Virus record (IMG/VR): IMGVR_UViG_3300017917_001123
Coordinates: 124,001 to 188,000 of that record
Direction: 5' to 3' (one strand)
DNA length: 64,000 nt
In this document: piece after piece, positions 2,585 through 47,760 of the stretch
Layout of the letters: the number at the start of each line of letters is the position of its first letter
How positions within the stretch are numbered: position 1 is the first letter of the stretch
Made by a program: the position numbers and the translations under genes
The notes under the pieces: generated by a model
The model's database searches: none
What the model saw: the letters and a program-made list of their open reading frames with translations, nothing else
Told to the model about the DNA's origin: nothing

Positions 2585-3244
2585 ATGCGTATTCAAGATT
2601 TATTAGTAGAAACAAGTTTAAGCGAAACTCAATTAGATGAACTTAATGTTGCTCAAGGCATTGGGAAATTCGCGAGAGGCGCAGGAAAAGCCGTAGGTGG
2701 AGTTCAAGGGGCATGGAGCGGTGCTAAACAAGCATTTGGACAAGCACGTCAAACAACAGCTCAAAACGTACAACAAGCAGTATCGGGTCAGGCCGCTCCG
2801 CAACAAGCACCGGCACAACAGGCTCCTGCTCAAACACAACCAGGACAACCTGCCGCTCAAGTTGCTCCTGCTCAACAAGCACCAGTGGAACCTGCTCAAC
2901 AAGCGGCACCAGCAGATACTACTGCGGTTAATCCAGGTGTTCCAACTAGCGACGAACAAACACCACAGGCTAACCAAACTACAACAAATCCGGCGGCTGC
3001 TGGATCAAGAATTGGTGCTCCTGCTGGTAAACAAGCAGTTGATAACGCAATTAAGACTGTAAGTGCTGTCCGTACAGATCGCAGACAGGGTGTTATTGAT
3101 TATGCTCAACAGAAGCTAGATCAAGCAGAACAAGAATTGCTAGCACTTCGTAAGAACGCAGGTATTAAACAGCAACCACAGCTTCAAGTTCAGCAAGGTG
3201 GTAAAGCTCCTGCTCAAGCTCCGCAACAGCAAGCGGCAGTTTAA
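2585..3244 (+). CDS. Gln/Ala/Pro-rich low-complexity late protein, possibly an internal head protein, 219 aa
   Basis: Late promoter and SD AAGGA; APAQQ repeats; N-terminus MRIQDLLVE...LSE...LDE resembles Glu-specific prohead protease substrates. Confidence 0.7.
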   Translation: MRIQDLLVETSLSETQLDELNVAQGIGKFARGAGKAVGGVQGAWSGAKQAFGQARQTTAQNVQQAVSGQAAPQQAPAQQAPAQTQPGQPAAQVAPAQQAPVEPAQQAAPADTTAVNPGVPTSDEQTPQANQTTTNPAAAGSRIGAPAGKQAVDNAIKTVSAVRTDRRQGVIDYAQQKLDQAEQELLALRKNAGIKQQPQLQVQQGGKAPAQAPQQQAAV

Positions 3245-3417
3245 AAGAACGCAACTCCAGTTTCTTTAGCAGTTTCTAAATTACTTGCGATTATCTTTTG
3301 TATAATCTCAATGTCTTTGCGGTCAATAGATAGCAACTGTTCTATAGTTACACCACCCCGCATAAACCAACTACATCTATAAAGTTCTTCTTTTACGGCT
3401 TCTACTTCTTTTTCCAT
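3241..3417 (-). CDS. gp51-like baseplate/tail assembly protein, 58 aa (absent from the ORF track); probably the C-terminal part of a -1 frameshift fusion with the gp26-like gene
   Basis: Manual translation MEKEVEAVKEELYRCSWFMRGGVTIEQLLSIDRKDIEIIQKIIASNLETAKETGVAFF*; the same frame stays open back to the slippery site at 3471-3477. Confidence 0.75.
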   Translation of the reverse strand: MEKEVEAVKEELYRCSWFMRGGVTIEQLLSIDRKDIEIIQKIIASNLETAKETGVAFF

Positions 3418-3464
3418 CTCTGACGTTAGCTCTAAAATTTCTTCAAAGCTAAGTGGTAGAAGCC

Positions 3465-4331
3465 TTAGACGAAAAAATTTGCAGCGTCAAATACAAAAGG
3501 AACTTCAATTTCGGGCGGTGCGCCCTTTTCAAGCATCTCCGGTGTGCTTTGGAATTTCAATGGAGGCAACGCATTTCTGTCGTTCATTTCTCCGACATGC
3601 TTTTTAACTTTTTCAAAAATTTCTGCGTCACAGCCTCTCATGAATTCGCTGATAAATTCTGGGTTATCAGTTGTACCAGCAGACGATTCAATTTTATAAA
3701 CCGCTCGATTAACCAAATCTAAGGCTTTGGTTGAAATTTTGTCAAACGTTTGCTTAAATGCGTTGAGTTTTACATCTTCTTCAAGGTCTTGGTCACGAAG
3801 AATTGTCATCATCCGCTGTGTTTCAAATTCAGTGATCTGTGTTGTAGACTGTGTTCTGTAGTCAATTGGTTTAACATAGAGAACTAGATCAGGTCGAACT
3901 TCAACGCGGTCTTCCCAAGTAACTGTAGACTGAAGTCTATCAAGTATTTCACGAAGGTTAGCTTGGAAATCCATCGGCCCTTCCATAGTTTCGTGGTTAA
4001 CTTCTAATGTCAAATTCTCACCGTAGGTTGCCATTCTAATTGCTACAAGGATAACATCTAAGTCAATTTGCGGAGCTTCCCAAGCATCGATGATGTTGGG
4101 CATACAACTTTGAATAACATCAACAACACCTTGTCCATTGAGCAGAGCATCTGGAGTTTTAAGAATAATCTCATCTCTAGCAGTCATTGAATACACAGGA
4201 TATTCTCCGTTAATTGTGGGATTTAAACTGCCCTCGCGCCAGTATTTTCCGCCACTTGGTAAAGTGATGTAGACTTTAGGTTGTCTTAACATTGACAACA
4301 GAGGATTTGTTTTAGGTGTGTTTTCTGACAT
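3465..4331 (-). CDS. gp26: gp26-like baseplate hub / tail assembly chaperone, 288 aa
   Basis: LRQPKVYITLPSGG...MTARDEIILKTPDALLNG...DLDVILVAIRMATYGE matches the T4 gp26-like family pattern; adjacent to the tape measure gene; SD GGAG. Confidence 0.75.
   Translation of the reverse strand: MSENTPKTNPLLSMLRQPKVYITLPSGGKYWREGSLNPTINGEYPVYSMTARDEIILKTPDALLNGQGVVDVIQSCMPNIIDAWEAPQIDLDVILVAIRMATYGENLTLEVNHETMEGPMDFQANLREILDRLQSTVTWEDRVEVRPDLVLYVKPIDYRTQSTTQITEFETQRMMTILRDQDLEEDVKLNAFKQTFDKISTKALDLVNRAVYKIESSAGTTDNPEFISEFMRGCDAEIFEKVKKHVGEMNDRNALPPLKFQSTPEMLEKGAPPEIEVPFVFDAANFFV
3471..3477 (-). other. Candidate -1 programmed ribosomal frameshift slippery heptamer T TTT TTC
   Basis: Minus strand reads GCA AAT TTT TTC GTC TAA; the -1 frame (TTT TTT CGT CTA AGG ...) is open for 76 further codons into the gp51-like ORF. 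Confidence 0.7.
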
Positions 4332-4405: not shown

Positions 4406-6850
4406 ATGGCTCAAGTCGTAAAAGGTTTCATAGCCGATCAACCGGTTGAATTAAACAATGCCGCAACAGAAGCAACGCTGACTGCGATGCTAGCTATTGC
4501 TAAGAAAGATAGCACAATTCTTGCGGCTATGGCTAGGAAAGCCGGTGTAGACGCAGAAGTAATCAAAAAAGCATCTAAAGCATTGGAACAGCAAGCGGCC
4601 GCTGGCACACAAGCAGGGCAAGGATTAGGCAATCTTGTTCCTAAGGCTAATATTTTAGGCGGCTTCTTAATGGACATGGGGCAGTCTGTAATGAAGACTG
4701 CTGGAAACTTAATTGATTTCGGTGATGAGTTATTAGAAGGTAAAGCTCGTGCTAGCGACTTGTTTAAAGCATTTAAAGACTTACCATTAGGTCTTGGTCT
4801 ACTTGCTACAATGTTCCAAAAAGCAATGCAGTATCAAGAACGAAATCTTGATGTTTACCGACAGATCAGCGATACCGGCGCAGGCCTTAATGGAAGTTTA
4901 AACAGTTTAAGAATACAAGCGTCGGGTATGTATCTAACCCTAGACGAGTTTGCTGATGTTATGAAAACTAACAGTGATGTTTTTAGACAGCTAGCAGGTA
5001 ATGCCGGTTCTGGAGCAAAAACATTTCAAGGTATTAGTCAAGCATTGATGAAAAGTCAACTGGGCGACGAACTGTTAGCACTTGGATTTAATTTTACTCA
5101 GGCAAATAATTTAATTGGGTCTTACATTAGAACTAGTGGTGATGGTGTGCGAGCAGGAAAAAATGTAGCAGAAGAACATGCTAGACTTGCTAAAGCATCA
5201 GCACAATACGGTAAAGATTTAGATTTCCTTGCTAGACTAACTGGCGAAAGTAGAGAAGCCGCACAGAAAAAGCTAGAAGAAGCACAAATGGAAACCAGCT
5301 GGCAAATGTTTGTTAACAGCATCACAGATCCTGTTAGAAAACAGAATATTCAGCAGGCATTAATACGAGCACAAGCAACAGGTGATAAAGGCGTTGTCGA
5401 TCTCTTTAAAGCTAGAATGATGAATTTTGCCGGCGGATTTTCTGATGAAGCGGCAACTGTTCAGTCAATGTTCCGCGGCGCATCTGAAATGGTTGAAGGA
5501 TTTGTTAGAATTGGTAACTCTAATATGAGTCGAGAAAAGGCACAAGCTGAGTTAGATAGACTACAGGCTAGAGGTACCGCAATGACAATCAAGGAGCTGG
5601 AAAGCTATAAAAACATTGTTATGGCAACGGGTCAAGGCGCCGAAGGAACAAATAAACAGCTAATGGCAATGCAGGATCTTGCTAACAAGTATAATCAAGC
5701 AGGAAAAAAGAACGAGGCTCAAATTTTACAAAGTATTATCGACGCAAGATCTAAAGGTGATGCTGACGCAAAAGCTGCCGCCGCAGCCGCCCAAAGCGAA
5801 AAACGCATGAAAGAATTAAGCCATCAGGTTAACATGGCTCTATTACCTGTATTAGAACTTTTAGTAGCCGCAGGAAATCGGTTAGTTAAAGCATTTTCGG
5901 AATTTGTCGGTGACAGCGGAATTTTGAAAAAATTATCAAGTGCAATCACTGCTGTGGCGAATTTTATCGACCTTGCGTTTAGAGATCCAGATGCCGCATG
6001 GAATAAAATTTCCTCTTGGTTTAAAGAATTATTAGGTAAGTTCTTTGACGCATTTAGTAAGAGTGCGCTAGGCAGAGCAATGTTTGGTAATCTAGCAGAA
6101 GGACTTCAGCGCGATGCTAAAATTGACGCTATGCGAGCTCTTGATCTAAAACGTTTAGAAGAGCTAGAAAAAAAGACAGAATTAAATCAGGAAGAAAAAG
6201 ACGAACTTCAAAAGATGAAAAAAACAATCGACGAAGGTCGAGTTGCTTTAGGGCAAAAGTTTAGAGAATCTGCTGATGAAGTTGTTGATAGATCTAAAGC
6301 AAGAAATGAAGCAATGGATGAAATTGCTAAGAAATACGGTGTAACTCGTCGAGAAGTTGATGTAGGTTATTCTGAAAGGTTGGGCGGAAATGTAAACCTA
6401 ACGAGAGAATATACAGATCTCATGAATAAAAAAATCGACGAACAAAAAGCTCTCGAAAAACGAATGAAAGATACAGCATCCGGACTCGAAGCTAACAGAT
6501 TTAGAGAGTGGAAACTACAGCAGATGGATCCGGCTAAGGCAAATAGCTTTGCCGGAGGAACCGCAAGTACAGGTAGTCTAATTCGAGATTTTGGAAAAGG
6601 AACTATTGCCGAGCTTCACGGAAAAGAGGCTGTGTTAACTGAAGACCAATTAAAAAATCTTGTGAAAAATTTGGAAAATTCTAAAGGTTTAATGCATGTT
6701 TCTACAGATCCTGAGCTTCAAAAACAGCTCACATCCGCCGTTATAGCCTTAAATAAACAACAAGAGAGAACTAATGTACTACTCGGTAGTATTGCCGATT
6801 ACACAAGAAGAACATCTGAAATGGGCTCTAATAAATTCGCAAGGGTATAA
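4406..6850 (+). CDS. Tape measure-like protein (gp29 analogue), 814 aa
   Basis: Long Ala/Leu/Gln-rich alpha-helical sequence, C-terminal GTIAELHGKEAVLT motif typical of tape-measure-like proteins, adjacent to the tail chaperone-like pair. Confidence 0.7.
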   Translation: MAQVVKGFIADQPVELNNAATEATLTAMLAIAKKDSTILAAMARKAGVDAEVIKKASKALEQQAAAGTQAGQGLGNLVPKANILGGFLMDMGQSVMKTAGNLIDFGDELLEGKARASDLFKAFKDLPLGLGLLATMFQKAMQYQERNLDVYRQISDTGAGLNGSLNSLRIQASGMYLTLDEFADVMKTNSDVFRQLAGNAGSGAKTFQGISQALMKSQLGDELLALGFNFTQANNLIGSYIRTSGDGVRAGKNVAEEHARLAKASAQYGKDLDFLARLTGESREAAQKKLEEAQMETSWQMFVNSITDPVRKQNIQQALIRAQATGDKGVVDLFKARMMNFAGGFSDEAATVQSMFRGASEMVEGFVRIGNSNMSREKAQAELDRLQARGTAMTIKELESYKNIVMATGQGAEGTNKQLMAMQDLANKYNQAGKKNEAQILQSIIDARSKGDADAKAAAAAAQSEKRMKELSHQVNMALLPVLELLVAAGNRLVKAFSEFVGDSGILKKLSSAITAVANFIDLAFRDPDAAWNKISSWFKELLGKFFDAFSKSALGRAMFGNLAEGLQRDAKIDAMRALDLKRLEELEKKTELNQEEKDELQKMKKTIDEGRVALGQKFRESADEVVDRSKARNEAMDEIAKKYGVTRREVDVGYSERLGGNVNLTREYTDLMNKKIDEQKALEKRMKDTASGLEANRFREWKLQQMDPAKANSFAGGTASTGSLIRDFGKGTIAELHGKEAVLTEDQLKNLVKNLENSKGLMHVSTDPELQKQLTSAVIALNKQQERTNVLLGSIADYTRRTSEMGSNKFARV

Positions 6851-15501: not shown

Positions 15502-15831
15502 ATGGCAATCACAAGTTCACAAGTTACAACATCTGGTAACCCACCAGTTCAAGTTTACGAATCTCAAGGACAAAATGCTATTACAAGCATGATGTTCTGT
15601 AATACAACAACAAACCAAACTGTAAACATTGACATCTACGTTGTTAGCGATGCTAGCGGCTTTGCTCCTGGCCCGCAAACTCAAATTTTAAAAGCAATTC
15701 CTATTCCTCCTGAAGAAACTTTTGTCATGGATACTGAAAAGTTTATCCTTGAAGATCTTGATGGTGTTTATGTTCGAGCCGATGTGCCAAACGCAATTAC
15801 AGTAACAGTGAGCTCAGTGAGCACAGCATAA
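15502..15831 (+). CDS. Small beta-sandwich-like virion protein, 109 aa; paralogue of 27439-27825
   Basis: VYES...AITSMMFCN...IPPEETFVMD.EKFILE..D.V pattern shared with the 128-aa ORF. Confidence 0.7.
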   Translation: MAITSSQVTTSGNPPVQVYESQGQNAITSMMFCNTTTNQTVNIDIYVVSDASGFAPGPQTQILKAIPIPPEETFVMDTEKFILEDLDGVYVRADVPNAITVTVSSVSTA

Positions 15832-16647: not shown

Positions 16648-19600
16648 ATGGCCGTAGGTCGAATTACAGGTCCGCTCTTAGCAAGCAATTTGTTAAGAGA
16701 CGGAGTAAATTTATCAGTAGAAACTGATCTCTTATACTTAGATGTTCAAACAGGTCGTATTGGTATCAAGACGTCTAGTCCGCAGTATGATTTAGATGTT
16801 AACGGTACAGCAAACATTGATGTATTGCGTGTATCAAATACCTCAACGTTAGGTTTACTAACAGTTACCAAATCCGTCACAAGTGGTACAATTGGATCAA
16901 CACTAGGTCCTATCAACATTGACCCAGCAAATAACGAAAAGATTTATTTAAAAGCCAATACAGAAGTTATTGGTAACTTACATGCCACTGGCGAAATCAC
17001 AGCCGACGGTAACATTCGACTAGGTGATACAACATCAACTGATACACTTAAAGTTGGTGCTGAGATTATTTCTAACCTAATTCCTCAAACACCAAACACT
17101 TACGATATAGGTTCACAAAGCCAAAATTGGCGTGCCGCTTATTTCCAACAATTATTCACAGGCAATCTACATCAGTTTGGCAACACAATTACAAACGTTC
17201 TTCCTCAGAACATTGATATTATTCCTCAAGGCGGAACATTAAACATCTACGGTAATGTTCGCATTTGGGAAGGAACACCTTTAGGTACTGCCCCTCAAAC
17301 TAACAACGTTTTATATGTAACAGAAAATGGCAGTGACACAAACGACGGTTCGGCAATGGACGCCTCTCGTGCTTGCCGTACAATCAGTGGTGCTGTTCGT
17401 AGTCCATTATACAAGCCAGGTACAAGTATTAAAGTTGCTCCTGGCCATTATCTAGAACAAAACCCAATTGAATTAAAACCTTACACATCTGTTATTGGTT
17501 CTGACCTACGTACAACATTTATTGAACCAATCAACAAGACACAAGACGTATTCCATGTTCGTTCTGGTTGCTACATTGCCCAGATGAATATCTTTAACGG
17601 TCGTTCTGGACGTTTCCCAGGAACTGGTTATCTAGCAGATACAAACCGCGGAGCCTACGCAGTTGCGTTCCCACCAAACGGCGACAACGGAGTTCCAGTA
17701 GACGTATTCCAATCTCCATATATTCAAAACTGTACAAACCAATCAGGTCCTTGGTTATATGACGGTACTATGTTTGTACCTAACCAAACAGTTCAAGTTC
17801 CAGAAGGTGTTGGTATCTCGACATACGAAGCTGGTACACAAGAAATTGAAGTAACATTATCTGAAGGTGAAATCTATGTTGGACAGAGCATTAACGGTGC
17901 TCCGCCAAATCAAGGATTCTTCAATGCTCGTACATTGTTATTATCAAACAAGCCGTTTATTCAAGAGCAAGTTGTTGCCTATGTTGACCAACAGTATGGC
18001 GGCCCATTCCAATACAACGCAGTCAAGTGCGCTCGCGACACTGGTCTTATCATTGACGGCCTAGGGTTAGATCTAGTTTACAACTCAACAAGCCAATCAG
18101 TATTCTCTGGTTTACAATATTGGAGCCAAACATCTTCACCGACACAGATTGCTGGTGAAGAAACTACAACAACAAACGCATTTAACTATATTAATAGTAT
18201 TGCTCAATTAGTTGTTCGTGCTCAAGCAGTTTCAACACCATACCAGAATACACTAACACAAGTTACTGCTCTTCCAGCCGGAGCTATTGGCGATGCTAAC
18301 AGAGTATCTTCGTTGTTTACAACTGCTACAAACATTATTGTTGAAGGCACATCTGGTATTAGCGACAAGATTATTTCAAACGGCGCAGTTACTTCTAACA
18401 CAAGTACACAGGCCGCTTACAATCTTCTACAGGCAAACAAAGAATTCTTAAAGGCAGAAGCCATTGCTTGGATTTCTGCTAACTCTCCGACCTTTACTTA
18501 CGACCAAGCAAAGTGTAAGAGAGATGTTGGCTATCTAGTTGACTGTGTATCGTTTGACTTACTACACGGTGGTAACCGTCAAGTAATTCAAGCAGGTACA
18601 TATTACTACGGTTACAGTTCTGTTAACAGCGCAATTCCGGGAGAACAGGCTCAGACAATTCTAGCATACAATTACATGAAGAATGTAATCTCTGCCGTTG
18701 TTCAAAGTCAGAAGCTAACACGCTTCTATCAATCTGAGATTCCTCAAGTACTTGATAATAACAACGCAGGGTCAGCTGCCGCCGCAACGACTATTACTGG
18801 AAATATTGATTTAATTACAAGATTAGTTCGAGTCGGTCCAGAAGGCGCACCAGCATTAGAGCCAATTGGTTTAACACGTTCAGTTGATACTGGTGTGTTA
18901 AATGCCTATGCTCTGTTAACTGCTAACATGGACTTTATTAAGGCAGAAGTTATTGCCTATGTAAACACATTACCTAACTTTGTTTACAACAAAGAGAAGT
19001 GCTACAGAGACGTTGGAATTATTATTGAAAACGTTTCCTTTGATGCGTTAAATGGTGGAAATGAAAAAGCACTTGAAGCAGGCTTGTCTTATTACAACGG
19101 TGTAACAAGTGTAATTCAAGGTCAAGAAACACAAACAGTTGGCGCAATCGAATATATTAAATTCTTAGCAAGAAAAGTTATTCGTAATCAAACTTGCCCA
19201 GACCTATTAAGCGGCCGCGGCGCAGAAAGCCAGCAAATTAACTATGTTTTAACTGGCGGTGGTATCGCTCAACCGGCATTAGATAAAGGCTTTGATCTTA
19301 TCACTGGTATCATTACTAACGGCCCATCTTTTGCTCCTACTTCTTATCCAGGATGCGCTGTCGATCCATACTTGATGAGTGCTGAAGTTCTATTACAAGC
19401 TAATAGAAGTTTCATCCAAGAAGAAATTGTTGAGTTTGTTAATAAGTCTTTCTTAACATTCCCATTCAACACATCTAAATGCCGCCGTGATACTGGTTTA
19501 ATTGTTGACGCAATCGCAATGGATATGATGTATCCCACTGCGTCAGACAGTCAATCAACATTCGCAGGTATCCAATACTGGAAGAACGGAAGCTATACTG

Positions 19601-22600
19601 GCGACATTGAAAAAGAATTAACAACAACAACAAATGCTATTAGCTATCTAAGTAGCCTAGCACAAAAATTAATTCTAAACGATATTTCTGGTCCACGTTA
19701 TCAGACAGCAGTTACACAAAATACAAGCCTTGCGTCTGCTACAGTTTCTGAAGCAGACATAATTGGAACAGATTTAGATCTAGTTATTTCAATTCTAAAT
19801 GATGGAACCGAAGGCATAACTGACAAAGTTATTCCAAACGGTCAACCTCTAACTACCCCTGGTGTAATTAACGCTTACGAAATTTTACAAGCTAACAAAG
19901 CATACATCCAAGCAGAAGTTGTTGCCTACGTTGAAGCAACCAAGACTCCTGGATTTACATACAGCCAAGTAAGTTGCTCGAGAGATGTCGGTTACTTAGT
20001 TGACGCAGTTTCCTTTGACTTATTACATGGCGGTAACCGTCAAGCAATTCAAAGTGGTGTTTACTACTATTCATTTGACGGCCTTGTTAGTGCTATTCCA
20101 GGTGAAACAACTCAAACTGTTTCAGCATACAAACACTTAAAATCAATTCTTGCTAACATCATTACAGGAACAACTGTAACAGAGCGTTACCAAAATGTTA
20201 TTAATCAGAACGTATCTTTAAGTGCTGGAGGAAGTACTCAGGTAACAACCGCACAAGGTTTAGTTGATACAATTATTGATATTATTTTAGTAGGTCCAAG
20301 TGCCGCTCCAGCCGCACAACCATTGAGCCTAACAGAAAGTTCTACAGCATTAACAGTAAATGCGGCAAAGATCATCTCAGCAAACAGAGACTTTATCAAA
20401 GCCGAAATTATTGCTTATATTAATAAGACTTTCCCAAGCTTCAGATACAACAGCGAAAAATGTGCTCGCGATACCGGCTTGTTAGTTGATGCTATAGCAC
20501 AAGATTTATTATTTGAAGGCAATACACAATCAGTATTCTCTGGTGTTCAGTATTGGAAACAAACTGGTTACACTGGTACTATCGCAAATGAATTAACAAC
20601 TACAACTAGCGCAATTAGCTATGTAAGCGACCTTGCTCAAAAAATTGTTAAGAATGTCACAAGCGGACCACGTTATCAGTCAGCAGTTACACAAAACACA
20701 GTTTTACCAGCCGCTACTACAATTCAATCATATAAGATTAGTAAAGAGTTTGAATTAATCTTAGAATTAATCAATGATGGATTACTAGGAGTTACTGATA
20801 AGATTGAACCTAACAGTTTAGTAGCAAGCGGCGATTCAAATGTCATTGCCGCATTTGATTTACTACAAGCTAATAAAGCATACATCCAAGCAGAAGCTGT
20901 GGCTTTTGTTGAATCAACTAAGACACCTGGCTTTACTTACGACCAAGCCAAGTGTTCTCGAGATGTTGGCTACATGATTGATAGCGTATGTATTGACTTA
21001 CTATACGGCGGTAACCGTCAAGCAATTCAAAGTGGTGTTTACTATTGGGATGCTTCAACTGGCGTTACCGCAATTCCGGGCGAAATTACTGAAACCCTTG
21101 ATGCTTACAACTATCTAAAGACTATTGTTGAAAAAGTAATCTTAGGTATACCAGCACCAAGAAGCCAAAGCAACAAGATTGTTCAAGTAACAAACTTGCC
21201 AACAGCGTCTGACACAGAAGTAACCTTATTAAGCAACAAAATTAATAAGATTACAAACATTATTCAAAACGGACCATCTGTTGTAACAGTTAAAGAACCA
21301 ATTAGCTTAGTTCGTACATCCGACGCAAACAAGAAACGTGCTTACGATTTGCTAATGGCAAACAGAGAGTTTATTGCTAGCGAAATTGTTTCTTACATCA
21401 ACGAAAAGTACAATGGAATTTCTTATTCTTACAACAAGGTTAAGTGTTTCCGTGATACTGGGTTGATTGTTGATAGTATTGTTACTGACTTAGGTTGGGG
21501 AACAAACGGATTTACACAAAGCAACTTTGCCGGTTTACAGTACTGGAACCAAAACGGTTATACTGGAGACATCCAACGAGAGCTAACAACCACAACTAAC
21601 GCAATCAACTATCTAAGCACACTTGCTCAGAAAATTGTTCAAAATGATTTAACAGGTACTCGTTATCAGTTTACACTAACTCAAAACATAAGTCTACCAG
21701 CCGCAACACCAATTGAAGCATCGGCTATTGCTTTAGACTTTAGCACCGTTACAAACATCTTGTTAAACGGAACAACTGGTGTAACAGATATTATTGTTTC
21801 AAATGGTATTACTGCTCTAAGTTCAGACGCACAACACGCTTACGATTTATTACAGGCAAACAAGGCATACATGCAGGCCGAAGTTATTGCTTGGGTCGAA
21901 GCAAACAAAGGCACTGGATTTGTTTATGATAGTACTAAGTGTTCAAGAGACACTGGCCTAATTGTTGATGCTGTGGTACAAGACTTATTGTTTGGCGGAA
22001 CAAGTCAAACAACATTTGCTGGTATTCAATATTGGAACCAAAATGGTTACGTAGGAACCATCGCAAGTGAGTTAACAACTACAACTAACGCAATTTCTTA
22101 TGTAAGCAGTCTGGCACAAAAAGTAATTCAGAACGATACACTAGGAACAAGATATCAGTCAACTGTAACACAAGTTACAAATCTTGATCCAGGTACCGTT
22201 ACAGAAGCGACTCGCGTTGCCAGCGACTTTACTGTAATTTTAGATATTTTACAAAATGGTACTGCTGGGGTAAGCGATAAGATTATTCCAAACGGTATCG
22301 ACGCAGACATTAATACTAATGTTCAAAATGCCTTTGCTGTTCTTCAAGCAAACAAGGCATACATTCAAACAGAAGCAGTAGCATTTGTTGAATCAACTAA
22401 GACACCTGGCTTTGTATATGATCAAGCTAAGTGCTATAGAGATGTTGGTTACATGATTGATAGCATCTGTATCGACTTGCTATATGGCGGAAATCGTCAA
22501 GCAATTCAAAGCGGGGTTTACTATTATGGTTACAACGGAAGTTCAAGTGCAATTGCTGGAGAACAAACAGAAACTATCGCCGCATACAATCATATCAAGG

Positions 22601-25600
22601 CAATCATAACCTCGATTGTTACTGGCGTAGAAATTACTAATCCTTATCAGCTAGCTGTTCCGCAGGTAAGAACACTATCTGCCGGTACAAGCGCAGAAGT
22701 AACAACTTCTCAAGGATTAATTGATGTTATTACAAATATCATTCAGAACGGCCCAACCGTTGCGGCAGCTCCTGCCCCATTAGGATTAACAAAGAGCTCA
22801 AACGCAAACGTTCAAAACGCGGCCGCAATGTTACTTGCTAACAAAGATTTTATTGTAGCAGAAACAATCGCTTATATTGATTCTACATACGCAAAAGGTT
22901 TTGATTACGATCAGGCTAAGTGCTATCGAGACATGGGTTATCTAATTGATAGTATCAGTTACGATATTCTATACGGCGGCAACAGACAAGCAGTCAACAG
23001 TGGTGTTTACTACTACGGATTTGATGCTTCAGCAAGTGCTGTAGCAAACGAGCAAGTACAAACCGCCGCGGCCTATAACAGATTAAAAGAAATTATTCCT
23101 TTAATCATTACTAACCAGCCAGTAGCACCGACAGACGGTAATGTAACAGAACAACAGTTCAACACATTTGGTTCAAATGAAGAAGTTAGCCAATTAACTT
23201 CTCAGATGATTCAGTTAATGGTTGACATTATCCAAGACGGCCCAAGTGCGGCGATAGCAAAAACTCCAATCGGTCTAACAGAGAATACTGATGCTAATAT
23301 CCAAAAAGCAATGGTACTATTACGTTTAAACAGAGAGTTTATCCAAAACGAAATCATTGCTTGGGTTGACGCAACATACAAGAAGGGCTACTTTAATTAC
23401 AGCCAAGAGAAGTGCTACAGAGATGTCGGCCTAATCGTTGATGCTCTATCTGGCGACCTATTAATTGGCGGAAACTTAAAGACAATCGAAGCAGGTGTTA
23501 CTTATTGGCTTGGCGGCGTTAACGCAGTTGCTAACGAAATACCTCAACAAAATGCTTCTTTAGATTATCTAAAGACCGTTGTTGCTAAGGTTGTATCTAA
23601 TCAAGAATTAGCTTCTATTAGCGGAGCACGTCAGATTATTAATCCTTACTTTGCTGGCGGACAATACACAACAGAAAACTTAAACAGATTAATTGACATT
23701 CTTAAGACAGTTATTTCTAAAGGTCCTGCTTTTGCTCCACAAGGGTATCAAGGAAGTGGTGCTTTCGCAACAAGTAACTCGTCGGTTGATTACATCCAAC
23801 CAGCAAGTACAGTTCTTGAGGTAACTGATTTAGGCGGATATCGTTACAGAGTTTATCTAAGCAAGCCTATCCTAGGCCCAGGAAATAACGCAACATTGTT
23901 CTTTGGACAAACATCAGTTTATCCTTTACTAGATAAGAATGTTCCAGATCGTTGGAATCAACGACGCATTGACCCATACGGTTCTGTAGGCGGTGCCCTA
24001 ATTGACGGCGCAGTTGTTTCTAAGCGTTCTCCAATTCAGTCGTTTGTTTTTGACGCATATACTCAACTTAACCAAGGCGGTATTGGAATTAAGATTACAA
24101 ACAGCGGTTACGCACAGCTAGTATCGGTGTTCACAATCTTCTGCGGAACATCTGTTATTGTAGAGAACGGCGGTATTTGTTCTATTACCAACTCTAACGC
24201 GAACTTTGGTGACTTCTGTCTAGTTGCTAAGGGTTACAGTAAGCGCGAGTTCTTCGGTGAAGTTTATAACCCACCAGTTCTACCTTACTATCCAAATGGA
24301 TTCTTCCCGCAGACACAGATTGTTGAAGTGTTCTGTCCAGACCCAGAAAACAGACCGCACATTGGTCAGATTATGGAAGTTGTTCCTCCTGAGGGATATA
24401 CTAACGCACAAGGTCTACCAGGATTCTTATCTGCGGCAATCAACACAAGCACATTAACAACTGGATCAATTAGCATAAGTGGAATTGATACAGAAGGTGT
24501 TGTTATTGGTCAAAACATTTATGTTCGCGACCAGTACGGTTCATACACTGATATTAACGGAACACGTTATGTTCCAGAAGGTACTATTGTAACAGATGTA
24601 TCATTTAAGACAATTACACTAAGCGAAAGTATCACATCGGGCGGTGGAGAACTTGGAAATCCAAACTACTTTACAATGTATGTTGCTGGTAATGCTTATT
24701 ACACAGTTCGTTCAAGCGAACTTGCTCCGGATCCAATTCCTCCTGGAACTTTCCGATTAGGCCCAAGCGCAACAGAACAAGGTAACGATCAAGGCGATGA
24801 AGAAATTCAAGCACTTCAATACCTAAACAATCTAGCAAATAAAGTTGTTAGCAATCAGCTAATTAGTGCGGCTCAAACAACATCAACTCAAGTAACTAAC
24901 TTGACATTAAGCGGTGGTGACCAAGCAACCATTAGAATGGGTGAATTGTTTACAACTCTACAAAGCATTATTACAAATGGTCTAGATGCGGCACCTGCTA
25001 TTAAGAAAGAAGGTGTTGTTCCGCCTGGAGCAGATAGCGCAAGTTCTTTACTAACTGCGAATACTCCGTTCTTACAAGAAGAAATCATAAAATATATTAA
25101 CAGTCAATACTTTGTATATGATCATGATCTATGCCGTAGAGACTTAGGTTACATTTTAGATGGCTTTGGTTGGGACGTTTTATTCCAATCTAACTACCAA
25201 GCTATTAAGTGCGGTAATGCTTATCTAAGAAATGTACCTGGAAGCAAGTATGTTTTAGAAAATGAAAAAGCACAAACAGTCGATGCTATTGATAGAATCG
25301 CTGACTTAACAAACGGTCTAAGTGGTATTAATACTGTTACTGGCGCTATTTCTGTTATTAACTTAGACGGTATCTACATCCAAAATATTATCAACGGCGC
25401 AGGCGCACCAGCATATAGTATGCCTAACCCGGCAGGCCTTGATAACGGCATAGCAAGTGCTAAGAGTTTAATTTTAGACAACTTAGCTTACATTAAAGAA
25501 GAAGTTATTGGATGGATCGATGCTACATATCCAACATTCACTTACGATCAAATTAAATGTAAGAGAGACATTGGTTTAGTATTAGACGGTGTAAACTGGG

Positions 25601-27423
25601 ATATCCTTTTAGGAACCAACTACCGTAGTATTAAATCCGGTCAAGCATACTTCCGTGGAAACGCAGAAGCATTATTAGCAAATGAAAAAACTCAGACAAT
25701 TGCCGCGTTTGGTTTTGTAAAAGATTACTTGTTAAATCTTTCAGTTGTTCAAGCAAGCACAACTGCTACACAAACTGTGACAAATGACTTTAATAATATC
25801 ATTGCTATTCTAAACGGAGGCATTGCGGCAAGCCCAACAGTAACATATACAATTCCGCCAGGCACAGTAACAGGCTTCTCAAGTGCAAGCCAGTTGTTAC
25901 AAGCAAACCGCGCATTTATTATGGCTGAGGTAGAAAATTACATTCATGTAACTTATCCAAGTCATGTATATGATCGAGCTAAGTGCGAAAGAGATGTTGG
26001 TTTAATTTTAGATGCTTTAATCTATGATTTAACTTACGGCGGAAACTCAATGACTGTTGATGCGGCTCTTCAATACTTTGATAACGCAAATAACAATGTT
26101 CGTGTAAATCCTAACGAAGTACCTGAAACAGTTGCTGGTATTAATTACATTAACACTATTTGCCAACGTATTATTCAAAACTTGGCTCCTGTAGTAAGCT
26201 ATCAAGTAGCTGTAACTCAAACATTCAATCCAAGTTGGCCACAAGGTTCTGTAGCTGGACCTACTGTTGCTGATCTTGTAAGCGATATCGCAAACATTGT
26301 TCAGAACGGTCCGTCTGCTACTCCGTTGATTACTGAGCCATCATATGCTTGGGCAAGTCCAAGTCAGATTCTGGCAAGAACAGAAATTGATGATTCTAAG
26401 GAACTGATTGCTACTGAAACTATTGCGTTCATTAATGATGAATATACAGTATTCAGTTACGATAAAGCAACATGCCGTCGCGATATGGATTATGTAATTC
26501 ATAGCATGATCTATGATTTAATTTACGGCGGAAATTGGCAGACAGTTGATGCTGGTTTAAATTATTGGAAAGGAGCTACTAGCTTAATTCCGGGTGAACA
26601 AGATCAAACAGTTGGCGCATTTACCTACATGCTTCAGTTAATGAAACGTGTTTCTCTAAATCAAGCACCAACACAGAGCTATCAGAACATTTACACACAA
26701 TTCTTTAATCCGTTATTGCTTGATGGACAAAATGCTCATGGTAAGTTAGAGGCGTTAACTGTTATTCTAAATAACATTATTCAAAACGGAACAGGCGTTG
26801 CTCCAGCAATTGAGTATCCTGGCACAACAGGATATAGTTCAACATTATTAAATGTTAAGAACATTATCGAAACACAAAAGACAAACTTGGTCAACCAGGT
26901 AATTACGTATATTGATAACAAGTATAACGGTTTTGAATATAACCAAGCGTTGTGTAAGCGTGACGTAGGGTTTGTAGTAGAAGCAATTGCCGCAGACTTA
27001 GTAAGTGGTGGAAACTACAACACAGTCTTATGTGGTCAGAGCTACTACGCAAGAGAAGGTACACACCACTATGTGACTATCGAAGATAACGTAGCAGATG
27101 CTACACTATTCCCAGATAAGGCACATATTAATTTCTATCGTCGTTCTTACATGTCTGCTTCTGGTTACTTGTTTGAATATGTAGGTGCTGGTTCTAACTA
27201 CGGTGCTCTACCTTATGTAGGACGATTTGATCCTAACCAAGAAAGAGAAACTGTACAGTTGAATAACGGTAAGGTATTCTTTACAAGTACTGACCAAAAC
27301 GGTGACTTCCGAATTGGTCCAGGATTGGTAATTAGCCAGGCAACTGGTGTGTTATCAGGACGTACATTTACGAAGTCATTGTTTGCTAACTTGACACCGT
27401 TCATCTTAGCAATTGAAGGATAA
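16648..27423 (+). CDS. Giant virion/appendage protein, 3591 aa: fibre-type N-terminus, split beta-helix, 17 helical C-x-R-D (phycobiliprotein-like) repeats, C-terminal fibre-type domain
   Basis: Uninterrupted ORF with strong SD; LYVTENGSDTNDG...IKVAPGHYLE beta-helix start; repeat motif F-x-Y-x3-K-C-x-R-D-x-G-x3-D-x4-D-x3-GGN. Confidence 0.9.
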   Translation: MAVGRITGPLLASNLLRDGVNLSVETDLLYLDVQTGRIGIKTSSPQYDLDVNGTANIDVLRVSNTSTLGLLTVTKSVTSGTIGSTLGPINIDPANNEKIYLKANTEVIGNLHATGEITADGNIRLGDTTSTDTLKVGAEIISNLIPQTPNTYDIGSQSQNWRAAYFQQLFTGNLHQFGNTITNVLPQNIDIIPQGGTLNIYGNVRIWEGTPLGTAPQTNNVLYVTENGSDTNDGSAMDASRACRTISGAVRSPLYKPGTSIKVAPGHYLEQNPIELKPYTSVIGSDLRTTFIEPINKTQDVFHVRSGCYIAQMNIFNGRSGRFPGTGYLADTNRGAYAVAFPPNGDNGVPVDVFQSPYIQNCTNQSGPWLYDGTMFVPNQTVQVPEGVGISTYEAGTQEIEVTLSEGEIYVGQSINGAPPNQGFFNARTLLLSNKPFIQEQVVAYVDQQYGGPFQYNAVKCARDTGLIIDGLGLDLVYNSTSQSVFSGLQYWSQTSSPTQIAGEETTTTNAFNYINSIAQLVVRAQAVSTPYQNTLTQVTALPAGAIGDANRVSSLFTTATNIIVEGTSGISDKIISNGAVTSNTSTQAAYNLLQANKEFLKAEAIAWISANSPTFTYDQAKCKRDVGYLVDCVSFDLLHGGNRQVIQAGTYYYGYSSVNSAIPGEQAQTILAYNYMKNVISAVVQSQKLTRFYQSEIPQVLDNNNAGSAAAATTITGNIDLITRLVRVGPEGAPALEPIGLTRSVDTGVLNAYALLTANMDFIKAEVIAYVNTLPNFVYNKEKCYRDVGIIIENVSFDALNGGNEKALEAGLSYYNGVTSVIQGQETQTVGAIEYIKFLARKVIRNQTCPDLLSGRGAESQQINYVLTGGGIAQPALDKGFDLITGIITNGPSFAPTSYPGCAVDPYLMSAEVLLQANRSFIQEEIVEFVNKSFLTFPFNTSKCRRDTGLIVDAIAMDMMYPTASDSQSTFAGIQYWKNGSYTGDIEKELTTTTNAISYLSSLAQKLILNDISGPRYQTAVTQNTSLASATVSEADIIGTDLDLVISILNDGTEGITDKVIPNGQPLTTPGVINAYEILQANKAYIQAEVVAYVEATKTPGFTYSQVSCSRDVGYLVDAVSFDLLHGGNRQAIQSGVYYYSFDGLVSAIPGETTQTVSAYKHLKSILANIITGTTVTERYQNVINQNVSLSAGGSTQVTTAQGLVDTIIDIILVGPSAAPAAQPLSLTESSTALTVNAAKIISANRDFIKAEIIAYINKTFPSFRYNSEKCARDTGLLVDAIAQDLLFEGNTQSVFSGVQYWKQTGYTGTIANELTTTTSAISYVSDLAQKIVKNVTSGPRYQSAVTQNTVLPAATTIQSYKISKEFELILELINDGLLGVTDKIEPNSLVASGDSNVIAAFDLLQANKAYIQAEAVAFVESTKTPGFTYDQAKCSRDVGYMIDSVCIDLLYGGNRQAIQSGVYYWDASTGVTAIPGEITETLDAYNYLKTIVEKVILGIPAPRSQSNKIVQVTNLPTASDTEVTLLSNKINKITNIIQNGPSVVTVKEPISLVRTSDANKKRAYDLLMANREFIASEIVSYINEKYNGISYSYNKVKCFRDTGLIVDSIVTDLGWGTNGFTQSNFAGLQYWNQNGYTGDIQRELTTTTNAINYLSTLAQKIVQNDLTGTRYQFTLTQNISLPAATPIEASAIALDFSTVTNILLNGTTGVTDIIVSNGITALSSDAQHAYDLLQANKAYMQAEVIAWVEANKGTGFVYDSTKCSRDTGLIVDAVVQDLLFGGTSQTTFAGIQYWNQNGYVGTIASELTTTTNAISYVSSLAQKVIQNDTLGTRYQSTVTQVTNLDPGTVTEATRVASDFTVILDILQNGTAGVSDKIIPNGIDADINTNVQNAFAVLQANKAYIQTEAVAFVESTKTPGFVYDQAKCYRDVGYMIDSICIDLLYGGNRQAIQSGVYYYGYNGSSSAIAGEQTETIAAYNHIKAIITSIVTGVEITNPYQLAVPQVRTLSAGTSAEVTTSQGLIDVITNIIQNGPTVAAAPAPLGLTKSSNANVQNAAAMLLANKDFIVAETIAYIDSTYAKGFDYDQAKCYRDMGYLIDSISYDILYGGNRQAVNSGVYYYGFDASASAVANEQVQTAAAYNRLKEIIPLIITNQPVAPTDGNVTEQQFNTFGSNEEVSQLTSQMIQLMVDIIQDGPSAAIAKTPIGLTENTDANIQKAMVLLRLNREFIQNEIIAWVDATYKKGYFNYSQEKCYRDVGLIVDALSGDLLIGGNLKTIEAGVTYWLGGVNAVANEIPQQNASLDYLKTVVAKVVSNQELASISGARQIINPYFAGGQYTTENLNRLIDILKTVISKGPAFAPQGYQGSGAFATSNSSVDYIQPASTVLEVTDLGGYRYRVYLSKPILGPGNNATLFFGQTSVYPLLDKNVPDRWNQRRIDPYGSVGGALIDGAVVSKRSPIQSFVFDAYTQLNQGGIGIKITNSGYAQLVSVFTIFCGTSVIVENGGICSITNSNANFGDFCLVAKGYSKREFFGEVYNPPVLPYYPNGFFPQTQIVEVFCPDPENRPHIGQIMEVVPPEGYTNAQGLPGFLSAAINTSTLTTGSISISGIDTEGVVIGQNIYVRDQYGSYTDINGTRYVPEGTIVTDVSFKTITLSESITSGGGELGNPNYFTMYVAGNAYYTVRSSELAPDPIPPGTFRLGPSATEQGNDQGDEEIQALQYLNNLANKVVSNQLISAAQTTSTQVTNLTLSGGDQATIRMGELFTTLQSIITNGLDAAPAIKKEGVVPPGADSASSLLTANTPFLQEEIIKYINSQYFVYDHDLCRRDLGYILDGFGWDVLFQSNYQAIKCGNAYLRNVPGSKYVLENEKAQTVDAIDRIADLTNGLSGINTVTGAISVINLDGIYIQNIINGAGAPAYSMPNPAGLDNGIASAKSLILDNLAYIKEEVIGWIDATYPTFTYDQIKCKRDIGLVLDGVNWDILLGTNYRSIKSGQAYFRGNAEALLANEKTQTIAAFGFVKDYLLNLSVVQASTTATQTVTNDFNNIIAILNGGIAASPTVTYTIPPGTVTGFSSASQLLQANRAFIMAEVENYIHVTYPSHVYDRAKCERDVGLILDALIYDLTYGGNSMTVDAALQYFDNANNNVRVNPNEVPETVAGINYINTICQRIIQNLAPVVSYQVAVTQTFNPSWPQGSVAGPTVADLVSDIANIVQNGPSATPLITEPSYAWASPSQILARTEIDDSKELIATETIAFINDEYTVFSYDKATCRRDMDYVIHSMIYDLIYGGNWQTVDAGLNYWKGATSLIPGEQDQTVGAFTYMLQLMKRVSLNQAPTQSYQNIYTQFFNPLLLDGQNAHGKLEALTVILNNIIQNGTGVAPAIEYPGTTGYSSTLLNVKNIIETQKTNLVNQVITYIDNKYNGFEYNQALCKRDVGFVVEAIAADLVSGGNYNTVLCGQSYYAREGTHHYVTIEDNVADATLFPDKAHINFYRRSYMSASGYLFEYVGAGSNYGALPYVGRFDPNQERETVQLNNGKVFFTSTDQNGDFRIGPGLVISQATGVLSGRTFTKSLFANLTPFILAIEG
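17915..27060 (+). repeat. Protein-level tandem repeat array: 12 + 5 copies of a ~142-165-aa helical unit with invariant C-x-R-D
   Basis: Cys codons at 18028, 18514, 19000, 19480, 19975, 20461, 20953, 21445, 21940, 22432, 22921, 23413, then 25132, 25558, 25984, 26473, 26953. Confidence 0.93.
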
Positions 27424-27438
27424 TAAGGAAAATATAAA

Positions 27439-27825
27439 ATGGCACTAATTCCATTAAACACGTTTAAAACTAAAACATTTGTTTTAACAACTACAACTAA
27501 CGCAACGGTTTATACTGCTCCAGTAGGAGTAACTTCGATTGTTTTGATGGCCAACGTTGCGAACGTTAGTACAAATACAAATGCTAGCGTTACGTTTGCT
27601 CACCATAGAAATCTTCCAGTGCTAGCAGATGCTCAAGGAAACGGCGGCCAACCCGGCAACGTAACGACTGAGCTAGTTAAGAATTTTGAAATTCCTCCAA
27701 GCGATGCTGGAAACATGCTAGTAGGAAAAATGATTGTTGAAAGTCTAGACAGCATTAGAGCATACGCAACAGTTGAAGGCACACTAAAACTTACAATGAG
27801 CATTCTAGAAACAGCTAACCAATAA
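27439..27825 (+). CDS. Small beta-sandwich-like virion protein, 128 aa
   Basis: VYTAPVGVTSIVLMANVAN...IPPSDA...KMIVESLDSI; related to 15502-15831; SD AAGGA. Confidence 0.75.
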   Translation: MALIPLNTFKTKTFVLTTTTNATVYTAPVGVTSIVLMANVANVSTNTNASVTFAHHRNLPVLADAQGNGGQPGNVTTELVKNFEIPPSDAGNMLVGKMIVESLDSIRAYATVEGTLKLTMSILETANQ

Positions 27826-46700: not shown

Positions 46701-47760
46701 TGGCACAGGTGGCGGTGGCGGTGGCGGTGGATCGTCAACACTAACAGAATACATTTCTGTAACAAGCTCAACCGTAGCACTATCAACCACAACTGGCGCA
46801 GTTCGTGTAACAGGTGGTGTTGGTATTGGTAAGAACTTATTTGTTGCTGGTCCAATAACAGTTGGCGGATCTACATCGTTTATTGACACAAGTGCCCAAA
46901 TTCAAGCTAATGGCGGAATTCAAGCATCCGGTTCTGTTGTTGGTAAAGACATGTATGCTTCTGGTGGTAACCTACTAGTTCAAAGCTCAGACTTTACACA
47001 GGCTAACTGGGCTAAGTTTAACAGCACAGTACAAGCAGGTTCTACAATTAGCCCAGACGGTACACTAAATGGTACTAAGTTAATCGAAACTGCGGCAACT
47101 GGTGGTCACTACTTCCAGCAGACAATTAGTCAAACTGGTCCGATTACATTTAGCGCATTCTTAAAAGCAGGTGAACGTACATTTGCTATCTTGAACGCTA
47201 CTGTAGCAGGTCAACCACATGCGGCTTGGTTCAACTTAACAACAGGTGCTCCAGCAACTAAGCAGGAAAGCCTATACAAAGTTGATAGTCGTTGCGAACT
47301 TCTACCATACGGAGCAAGTTCAGGATGGTATCGTTGCTCAATCACTGTGTGGGCTCCAACAAGTGCTACAACAACTGCTGTAGGTATCTATACAGCATTG
47401 GGCAGTGAAAGTGTAATTACTGGTACATTAAGTTCTTATACAGGTACAGCTGGTAACGGTTTATATGTATATGGAGCACAAGCTGAGCCAGGTTACTATC
47501 CAGGTGACTATTTTGCTACTGCGGCATCAACAGTTGCTCCAACAGCTAATAGCTATGTAGGTGGAAGTCTATATGTTGCTAACACAGGTACAGTTGGTGG
47601 TTCACCGATTGTAACTTCAGCTAACCTAATGACATACTGGGGTGGCACAAGTGCTAACACCTTACAGATGACAAATACAACTAACGCAACAAGTACACAA
47701 ACTGGTGCGTTACAAGTTGTAGGTGGTGTTGGCATTGGCAAAGATGTTTGGATCGGCGGT
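28900..47760 (+). repeat. Dispersed protein-level fibre repeat (S/T)-x-T-T-G-A-L-x-V-x-G-G-x-G-I-G, dozens of copies across the 2296- and 4437-aa proteins
   Basis: Visible throughout both translations; a few copies also occur in the 818-aa fibre. Exact count not made. Confidence 0.85.
34736..34799 (+). promoter_or_regulatory. SD-sequestering 12-bp inverted repeat with a late promoter in its loop
   Basis: AGTTTCCCTCTC (34736-34747) is the exact reverse complement of GAGAGGGAAACT (34788-34799), which overlaps the SD-like GGAGAGGG; TAAATA at 34753-34758 lies between the arms. Confidence 0.8.

Follow-up and report, generated by a model that had tools for sequence, protein, structure and literature searches.

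In lambda and many other long-tailed phages, tail assembly chaperones are made as a short and a long product from one gene, in which a heptameric slip site a few codons before the stop codon of the upstream ORF allows a programmed -1 ribosomal frameshift (gpG/gpGT; Levin 1993; Xu, Hendrix and Duda 2004, 2013, 2014; summarised in PMC5009743). This is among the most conserved recoding events in phages. The gene pair lies between the tube gene and the tape measure gene on the same strand, and the shared part binds the tape measure protein whereas the extension binds the tube protein. T4 has no apparent G/GT system. It encodes gp26 and gp51, listed as hub assembly chaperones by Leiman et al. 2010 (PMC3004832), as two separate, divergently transcribed genes. 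Both T4 gp26 (residues 1-206) and gp51 (residues 1-201) match the whole T4_baseplate profile (Pfam PF12322), and gp51 continues with a tail of about 50 aa.

The locus analysed here lies in a window of 64,000 nucleotides (positions 124,001 to 188,000 of IMG/VR record IMGVR_UViG_3300017917_001123) from the 331,570-bp genome of an uncultured, jumbo, T4-related phage. It comprises the following features.

3465..4331, minus strand: zero-frame ORF of 288 aa, the predicted short product, a gp26-like baseplate-hub assembly protein.
3471..3477, minus strand: slippery heptamer T_TTT_TTC (zero frame AAT TTT TTC), the proposed -1 shift site.
3465..3467, minus strand: zero-frame stop codon TAA, one codon after the heptamer and inside the 6-nt spacer.
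3241..3471, minus strand: -1-frame extension of 76 codons (3471-3244) plus the stop (3243-3241), the C-terminal domain of the predicted 363-aa long product.
3397..3464, minus strand: predicted frameshift-stimulating RNA structure, with an outer helix (3464-3456 with 3405-3397), an inner 11-bp hairpin (3452-3426) and a small stem (3425-3415) that pairs the ATG.
3241..3417, minus strand: the 58-aa ORF as seen by a gene caller, most likely an artefact representing the 3' part of the extension.
4406..6850, plus strand: divergently transcribed gene of 814 aa, a candidate tape measure protein and possible client (inferred from context).

The initial annotation had proposed a -1 frameshift fusing a gp26-like ORF to a gp51-like ORF, and this observation is confirmed, with all of its coordinates and its junction peptide correct. 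The 288-aa ORF ends GCA AAT TTT TTC GTC TAA, with the heptamer in X_XXY_YYZ register. The -1 frame reads RLRLLPLSFEEILELTSE and then M(3417)EKE... to the stop at 3243-3241, giving 287 + 76 = 363 aa. The claim that no convincing Shine-Dalgarno sequence precedes the ATG at 3417 also holds, as only a GAG directly abuts the ATG, which is base-paired in the predicted fold.

The 288-aa protein matches PF12322 at 31.2 bits against a cut-off of 24.5 (residues 23-250, profile positions 7-190 of 219) and PHROG 150 'baseplate hub' at E = 1e-9. A profile search showed that it is the only PF12322 gene in the genome. Its AlphaFold2 model (pLDDT 88) matches 55 viral models in BFVD at E <= 1e-3, with top TM-scores of 0.81-0.84, and all matches that carry a name are baseplate hub, hub assembly or baseplate proteins. 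Searches of the PDB and the Swiss-Prot AlphaFold DB with this model gave nothing significant, with a weak match to 140-aa Xylella proteins (E = 0.15).

Conservation of the heptamer and of the open -1 frame, which had been named beforehand as a test of the proposal, was examined in homologous loci. A DNA-level search of the phage collection found nothing, and only protein-level relatives exist there. The identical heptamer in the same register is present in 163 of 163 metagenomic homologues that reach their stop codon (including the window itself and four phage loci) and in 8 of 8 Rak2-like phages, 171 of 171 in total. These include 12 cultured jumbo phages of several genera (Rak2-like, Atu_ph07, Phosso, XaC1 and a PA5oct-like phage) with only 24-30% protein identity. 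The -1 frame is open for 70-77 codons (median 76) in the metagenomic set, against a median of 9 for the +1 frame, and for 69-77 codons across all homologues. Given the encoded amino acids and the codon usage of these genes, xxT TTT TTC is expected in only about 15 of 171 loci. TTC makes up 18% of Phe codons in these genes yet is used 171 of 171 times at the second Phe, indicating that the heptamer is held by synonymous-site choice. In contrast, the number of zero-frame codons between the heptamer and the stop varies among homologues (1, 3, 4, 6 or 11), so that tail is not conserved.

The extension is conserved as protein from the first codon after the slip, with R in 153 of 153 sequences, then RLL..., then W[YF]MRGG. 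AlphaFold2 predicts a three-helix domain at pLDDT 90. Searches of BFVD and the Swiss-Prot AlphaFold DB with this domain returned only small uncharacterised phage ORFs and insignificant hits. The alignments for two of the analyses were built without the rows from GenBank phage records.

Folding of the strand downstream of the heptamer gave -24.8 kcal/mol (z = -2.86), with a helix starting 6 nt after the heptamer in the window, against about 5-9 nt for the stimulatory structure of a canonical -1 frameshift site, and 3-6 nt after it among homologues. RNAalifold on all 137 sequences gave no consensus structure because two structural classes are mixed, and named helices were therefore counted instead. 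The outer helix has at least 8 consecutive pairs in 86 of 137 homologues and in none of the slid registers. There are 150 cells with changes on both sides, against 38-64 in slid controls, and 0 of 500 shuffles reach this. A second group of 22 sequences uses a different 3' partner for the same 5' arm. However, Rak2-like phages and XaC1 show no clear downstream helix, so the stimulator is not universal. No Rfam family matches.

Comparison with other relatives showed that the same domain and extension also occur in one frame. Nineteen natural PF12322 proteins of 319-351 aa carry the extension at their C-terminus, with the junction ...F-R-x-[KR]-[LI]-[LI]... matching the predicted ...FF-R-L-R-L-L... 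of the window. In 6 of 6 such loci examined, in uncultured relatives, a short paralogue lies directly upstream, and the synteny (portal, gene of about 800 aa, and the divergent hub genes), the N-terminal domain and the extension domain (E down to about 1e-22 against the extension profile) are the same. The short gene has lost the heptamer or keeps it with a closed -1 frame, and one of the six loci keeps a dead copy of the heptamer. These natural versions show that the long form is a viable protein, not that it is made in the phage studied here.

In comparison with T4, which has two PF12322 genes, the window's genome and four cultured frameshift-type phages have one each. The hub genes of those four match the whole profile, and the frameshift site falls at its last position. 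T4 gp26 ends at the same ...FF.. motif, but there is neither a slip site nor an open -1 frame after gene 26. As a further similarity, the gene faces the hub and tape-measure gene cluster across a divergent promoter region. The 58-aa ORF, called gp51-like in the initial annotation, is not a gp51 homologue as a whole, but would correspond to the gp51 tail (PF28602 in the precomputed annotation) only. The evidence for this correspondence is at best moderate and rests on modest profile scores. Alignments by hhalign of extension profiles against the tail gave P = 0.015, 0.017 and 0.0017, and end-to-end alignment of the long forms with full gp51 gave P = 1.1e-4, always over the same colinear region. 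However, Foldseek did not recover T4 gp51, no Pfam hit is on record for the called small ORF, and the gp51 tail is about 25 aa shorter. On this reading the 363-aa product is the counterpart of gp51 and the 288-aa product that of gp26. In a quick tree with long branches, T4 gp26 and gp51 group together, which suggests a duplication of their own.

The resemblance to lambda G/GT is one of design, not of family. The two systems share the position of the slip site, the N-terminal part common to both products, an extra C-terminal domain made only by the minor frame (both predicted here from sequence and conservation), a place next to a candidate tape measure gene, and relatives in which other gene arrangements can replace the frameshift. 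However, PF12322 proteins are about 290 aa with an alpha/beta fold, against about 140 aa for the small tail assembly chaperones. No such chaperone family appeared in the Pfam or PHROG hits, the PDB gave no fold match, and BFVD hits to the extension labelled as tail assembly chaperones have E > 1. A Pfam hit of the extension to Mu tail assembly protein gp41 (Gp41_Mu, E = 0.13) is shared by only 2 of 61 family members and was rejected as noise. The heptamer is U_UUU_UUC rather than G_GGA_AAG, and a long-range helix appears to stimulate the shift, whereas no such element is known to be required in lambda.

The gene is also divergent from the 814-aa neighbour rather than directly upstream of it, a portal gene follows that neighbour, and no tube gene is adjacent. 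The tube profile PF06841 gives only a weak hit in a 569-aa frame. The statement in the initial annotation that the pair sits beside the tape measure gene is plausible but not shown. ESM Atlas look-alikes of the neighbour that carry a name are mostly tape-measure families, and the CBB homologue was found in virions by mass spectrometry (PMC5259590). The arrangement of portal, gene of roughly 700-830 aa and divergent hub gene is conserved in Phosso, XaC1, Cassandra, GAP32, CBB and metagenomic relatives. However, the neighbour has no Pfam match, its BLASTP comparison with T4 gp29 is not significant, and the T4 tape measure (PF25671) and gp28 (PF11110) profiles find nothing in the genome. A complex prediction of the hub protein with residues 215-814 of the neighbour gave no answer.

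The interpretation of the initial annotation, a programmed -1 frameshift yielding a short and a long protein in the manner of G/GT, is strongly supported by comparison with relatives, with the refinements given above on gp51, the neighbour and the family. In the model held here with high confidence, most ribosomes would stop at 3465 and make the 288-aa form. A fraction would slip back one base on U_UUU_UUC, where both tRNA-Phe molecules can re-pair and the RNA helix probably makes the ribosome pause, and would continue for 76 codons to make the 363-aa form. The two forms are proposed to act together in hub and tail-tube initiation at a ratio fixed by the frameshift efficiency, as lambda gpG and gpGT do. 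The site, the open frame, their conservation, the RNA covariation and the contiguous versions of the long form are established by the sequence comparisons. That the trans-frame protein is made, that the shift is ribosomal, its efficiency, the binding partners and the chaperone mechanism are inferred. The locus was found only in DNA contigs from a pond metagenome.

Transcriptional slippage in the T6 run, by which a subset of mRNAs would encode the long form in a single frame, is the best surviving alternative but is unlikely. The site is a homopolymer run, the outcome would be identical, and the DNA contigs alone do not separate RNA from ribosome events. However, known bacterial and phage transcriptional slippage sites use runs of about 9 or more bases, whereas the run here is held at exactly six and is followed by C in 171 of 171 loci. 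The register is that of a tandem-slippage heptamer, and a covarying helix at the canonical 3-6-nt spacing is the hallmark of ribosomal -1 frameshifting.

Independent translation of the downstream ORF from ATG 3417 or another start, with the heptamer merely reflecting a conserved Phe-Phe motif, is still less likely. An ATG does open a 58-aa ORF in the window, and GenBank annotators and gene callers list separate small ORFs in relatives. However, that ATG is present in only 43 of 153 homologues, the 18 codons before it are conserved as protein, and in 53 of 167 loci the first ATG in the frame is at codon 36, inside the conserved core. Called start positions in public data scatter over the whole domain, and the Phe-Phe motif alone predicts the heptamer in only about 9% of loci. 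The missing Shine-Dalgarno sequence, the pairing of the ATG and the in-frame fusions in relatives also argue against this reading. An assembly error or decaying gene, in which the true gene would be one continuous 363-aa ORF broken by a homopolymer sequencing error or a recent inactivating mutation, is very unlikely: although homopolymer runs are error-prone and contiguous versions exist, the same break with exactly T6C is seen in 171 independent assemblies from many samples, sequencing platforms and cultured isolates, and the contiguous versions belong to a different, deeper branch of the tree and always come with a separate short paralogue.

Literature searches found no published description of this frameshift. 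Short/long pairs made by frameshifting are established for lambda-type chaperones, and this site places such a predicted pair in the unrelated gp26/gp51 family. Frameshift, tandem paralogues and, if the correspondence to the gp51 tail holds, the split genes of T4 would be three genetic arrangements delivering the same pair, which gives a concrete, testable model for gp26 and gp51. A broader reading, about as likely as not, is that the gp26/gp51 family is the functional equivalent of the G/GT chaperones in the T4 superfamily, a view of gp26/gp51 that the initial annotation had also inferred. Every lineage would then have to supply a short and a long form sharing one N-terminal domain, with the ratio set by a programmed -1 frameshift in jumbo phages (thousands of members in metagenomes) and by separate genes in T4 and some uncultured relatives. 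The three-helix extension would be the module that hands hub or tube subunits to the tape measure protein, the apparent lack of a G/GT system in T4 would be explained, and the 'catalytic' role of gp51 would be that of the minor long form.

The site also defines a very uniform frameshift cassette, U_UUU_UUC plus a covarying long-range helix, with hundreds of natural variants. It corrects the annotation of all 12 cultured jumbo phage genomes examined (four of the Rak2-like ones by coordinates), where the extension is listed as a separate small ORF or not at all. Two CxxC half-sites, a putative zinc ribbon, are present in T4 gp26 and gp51, Atu_ph07, Phosso, XaC1, Cassandra, the Rak2-like phages and the long paralogues. 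The window's protein and its clade have lost the four Cys residues, a lineage-specific loss of a feature that is not part of the Pfam definition.

On the minus strand, the 288-aa ORF ends with GCA AAT TTT TTC GTC TAA and contains a slippery heptamer, T_TTT_TTC, in X_XXY_YYZ register close to its stop codon. The relevant features of the locus are as follows.
4331-3465, minus strand: the 288-aa zero-frame ORF
3477-3471, minus strand: the heptamer T_TTT_TTC
3467-3465, minus strand: the zero-frame stop codon
3471 to 3241, minus strand: the -1 frame, from the first codon after the shift to the stop codon at 3243-3241
After a -1 shift, the frame reads RLRLLPLSFEEILELTSEMEKE... and remains open for 76 codons, so that the predicted trans-frame product has 287 + 76 = 363 aa. 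The initial annotation had proposed a -1 frameshift at this heptamer leading into the downstream ORF, and its observation holds, with the coordinates, the peptide and the size of the predicted product all correct.

The 288-aa protein matches Pfam PF12322 (T4_baseplate) above the curated cut-off, as well as PHROG 150 'baseplate hub'. The window belongs to a 331,570-bp virus record from a pond metagenome, which is 93% complete by CheckV. The neighboring genes encode a gp46-like nuclease subunit, a T4-type portal, a prohead protease and a major head protein, and the virus is therefore a jumbo phage with T4-like core genes. The nearest cultured relatives, with 24-30% identity for this protein, are Atu_ph07, Phosso, XaC1, Cassandra (a PA5oct-like phage) and the Rak2-like phages. 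In a relative with 60% identity in the hub protein (locus L175), a SegE-like GIY-YIG endonuclease and an Hc1 histone-like protein are located between the hub gene and the gp46/gp47-like nuclease genes (L175 8251-8873; by position this would be about 1455-2074 in the window). The T4-type portal gene of another relative (the contig of protein P0237, NCBI GCA_015689235.1) is 1015 aa long and carries an intein (PF14890) between two Portal_T4 segments. Downstream of the head gene block, the plus strand of the window carries three giant ORFs of 3591, 2296 and 4437 aa (16648-27423, 27838-34728 and 34801-48114, respectively), and small ORFs at 15502-15831 and 27439-27825 both match PHROG 1276.

Conservation of the recoding site was analyzed using four cultured loci, 160 loci from IMG/VR and JGI metagenomes and eight Rak2-like loci. 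In every locus that reaches its stop codon (171 of 171), the gene carries TTTTTTC in the same register at the C-terminal Phe-Phe. The -1 frame is open for 69-77 codons (a median of 76), compared with a median of 9 for the +1 frame. The zero-frame tail after the heptamer is 1, 3, 4, 6 or 11 codons long and is not conserved. The heptamer is kept by choices at synonymous sites: the preceding codon always ends in T, the first Phe is always TTT, and the second Phe is always TTC, although TTC makes up only 18% of the Phe codons in these genes. From codon usage, the heptamer is expected in about 15 of the 171 loci. None of the 12 cultured-phage records examined shows a joined CDS at this gene, and the extension is either listed as a separate small ORF or missing.

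Comparisons of the extension among homologues indicated that it is translated from the shift site rather than from a start codon of its own. Position 1 of the extension is Arg in 153 of 153 sequences, and positions 3-5 are R/K-L/I-L. Thus, the 18 codons before the ATG of the window are under protein-level constraint. At the position of this ATG, only 43 of 153 homologues have ATG, whereas the rest have Leu, Tyr or Phe codons. In 53 of 167 loci the first ATG in this frame is codon 36, which lies inside the invariant W[YF]MRGG core. In public gene calls, the small ORF starts at more than a dozen different positions of the domain. Within the window, no convincing Shine-Dalgarno sequence precedes the ATG, as the initial annotation had stated, and the ATG is paired in the predicted fold.

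The predicted RNA fold of the window has a 9-bp helix (3464-3456 with 3405-3397) that starts 6 nt after the heptamer and encloses an 11-bp hairpin at 3452-3426, with an energy of -24.8 kcal/mol and a z score of -2.86. Across homologues, the best long-range stem starting 3-10 nt after the heptamer scores a median of 10, compared with 6 for shuffled sequence. In an alignment of 137 sequences, the outer helix has at least 8 consecutive pairs in 86 sequences and in none of six slid registers. This helix shows 150 cells with changes on both sides (38-64 in the slid controls), a value reached by 0 of 500 shuffles. For example, one pair is G-C in 75 sequences and A-U in 28, and the next is A-U in 38, U-A in 31 and C-G in 7. 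A second group of 22 sequences pairs the same 5' arm with a nearer 3' partner. The two alternative pairings correspond to columns 22-32 with 64-74 and columns 20-33 with 83-96 of the homologue alignment A2, and many sequences could form either helix (for example, GTCAAAGA and GTCAAAAGCC are both complementary to GGCTTTTGAC), which hints at a switch or at a repeat in the protein. The helix is shared by Atu_ph07 and Phosso, and Cassandra has a local 11-bp hairpin at +6. However, the Rak2-like phages and XaC1 show nothing clear, RNAalifold gave no consensus on the mixed alignment, and no Rfam family matches.

The predicted trans-frame protein exists as an ordinary protein in other phages. A profile of the extension searched against 1.8 billion representative proteins gave 486 hits. 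Besides small ORFs, the best 150 of these include 19 proteins of 319-351 aa, in which the extension forms the last 76 residues after a PF12322 domain. Their junction reads ...F-R-x-[KR]-[LI]-[LI]..., matching the predicted ...FF-R-L-R-L-L.... In all six such loci examined, the long gene is directly preceded by a short PF12322 gene of 276-329 aa with no extension. The synteny with a portal gene is seen in two of the six loci and in part in two more, the remaining two contigs being too short to tell. One short gene has lost the heptamer. Another, the short paralogue of the two-gene relative L177 (411-1295), still ends with ...AAT TTT TTC ACT... but has stops in the -1 frame, and looks like a relic of a former frameshift site. 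In a quick maximum-likelihood tree, the two short genes included (those of the two-gene relatives L176 and L177) nest inside the frameshift clade of the window (95*), the long genes branch more deeply, and T4 gp26 and gp51 group together. However, the branches are long, and the tree does not settle the direction of change.

T4 gp26 (208 aa) and gp51 (249 aa) both match PF12322 over the full profile. Gp26 ends with ...KEFFELL*, with no slip site and a closed -1 frame, whereas gp51 continues for about 50 aa beyond the domain. T4 gene 25 starts on the last base of the gene 26 stop codon (TAATG, at 2803 of the T4 locus L005) and thus lies in the -1 frame relative to gene 26, but no slip site is present, and this is ordinary overlap coupling rather than recoding. 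T4 has two PF12322 genes, while the genome of the window, Atu_ph07, Phosso, Cassandra and GAP32 have one each, and in these four cultured phages the profile ends at the frameshift site. Profile-profile comparisons align the extension with the gp51 tail in the same colinear place every time, with P values of 0.015 for the clade of the window, 0.017 for the Rak2-like phages, 0.0017 for all cultured phages and 1.1e-4 for the full long forms against full gp51. This is moderate evidence for a relationship, and it was not confirmed by Foldseek. Comparison with the four cultured loci (L001-L004), the eight Rak2-like loci (L167-L174) and T4 (L005) showed that the clade of the window has lost all four cysteines of two CxxC half-sites, which are kept by T4 gp26 and gp51, Atu_ph07, Phosso, the Rak2-like phages and the in-frame long paralogues. 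Gp26 and gp51 are listed as hub assembly chaperones by Leiman et al. 2010, in which gp51 is described as essential but of unknown function (PMC3004832).

The extension is confidently predicted (pLDDT 90) to fold into a long helix, a short helix and a second long helix. The N-terminal domain is predicted to have an alpha/beta fold (pLDDT 88) with no solved relative, but it has 55 significant matches to viral hub proteins. Residues 142-251 of this model also gave a weak, non-significant fold match (E = 0.15, probability 0.82) to uncharacterized 140-aa Xylella proteins (PD_1186 and XF_1585), which may be prophage proteins. The 814-aa neighbor, which the initial annotation took as the tape measure gene, has no Pfam family. 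Its named look-alikes in the ESM Atlas are mostly tape measure proteins, it keeps its position in the relatives, and its CBB homologue is a virion protein. However, the T4 tape-measure and gp28 profiles find nothing in this genome, and a complex prediction of the hub protein with the neighbor gave no answer. The candidate tape measure role of the neighbor is thus an inference, as is the chaperone mechanism, which rests on the T4 literature, the design of G/GT (PMC5009743) and the fact that lineages without the frameshift always carry a short and a long gene. In contrast, the slip site, the open -1 frame, their conservation and the covariation of the helix are directly observed in the sequences.

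Of the alternative explanations, transcriptional slippage cannot be excluded in the absence of RNA data, but it is unlikely for a run held at exactly six bases with a covarying helix at frameshift spacing. Independent initiation of the small ORF is contradicted by the poor conservation of its ATG and by the protein-level constraint on the codons before it. A sequencing error is contradicted by 171 independent assemblies. Thus, the interpretation of the initial annotation as a programmed -1 frameshift is supported: the site is real, deeply conserved and unannotated, and we hold with high confidence that the shift is ribosomal, and with somewhat higher confidence that a shift occurs if transcriptional slippage is admitted as the route. 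In this view, the gp26-like and gp51-like forms of a hub assembly protein are produced from one gene, in a system that works like lambda G/GT but is not a member of that family. Literature searches found no description of this frameshift, although the short-and-long design itself is already established for G/GT.
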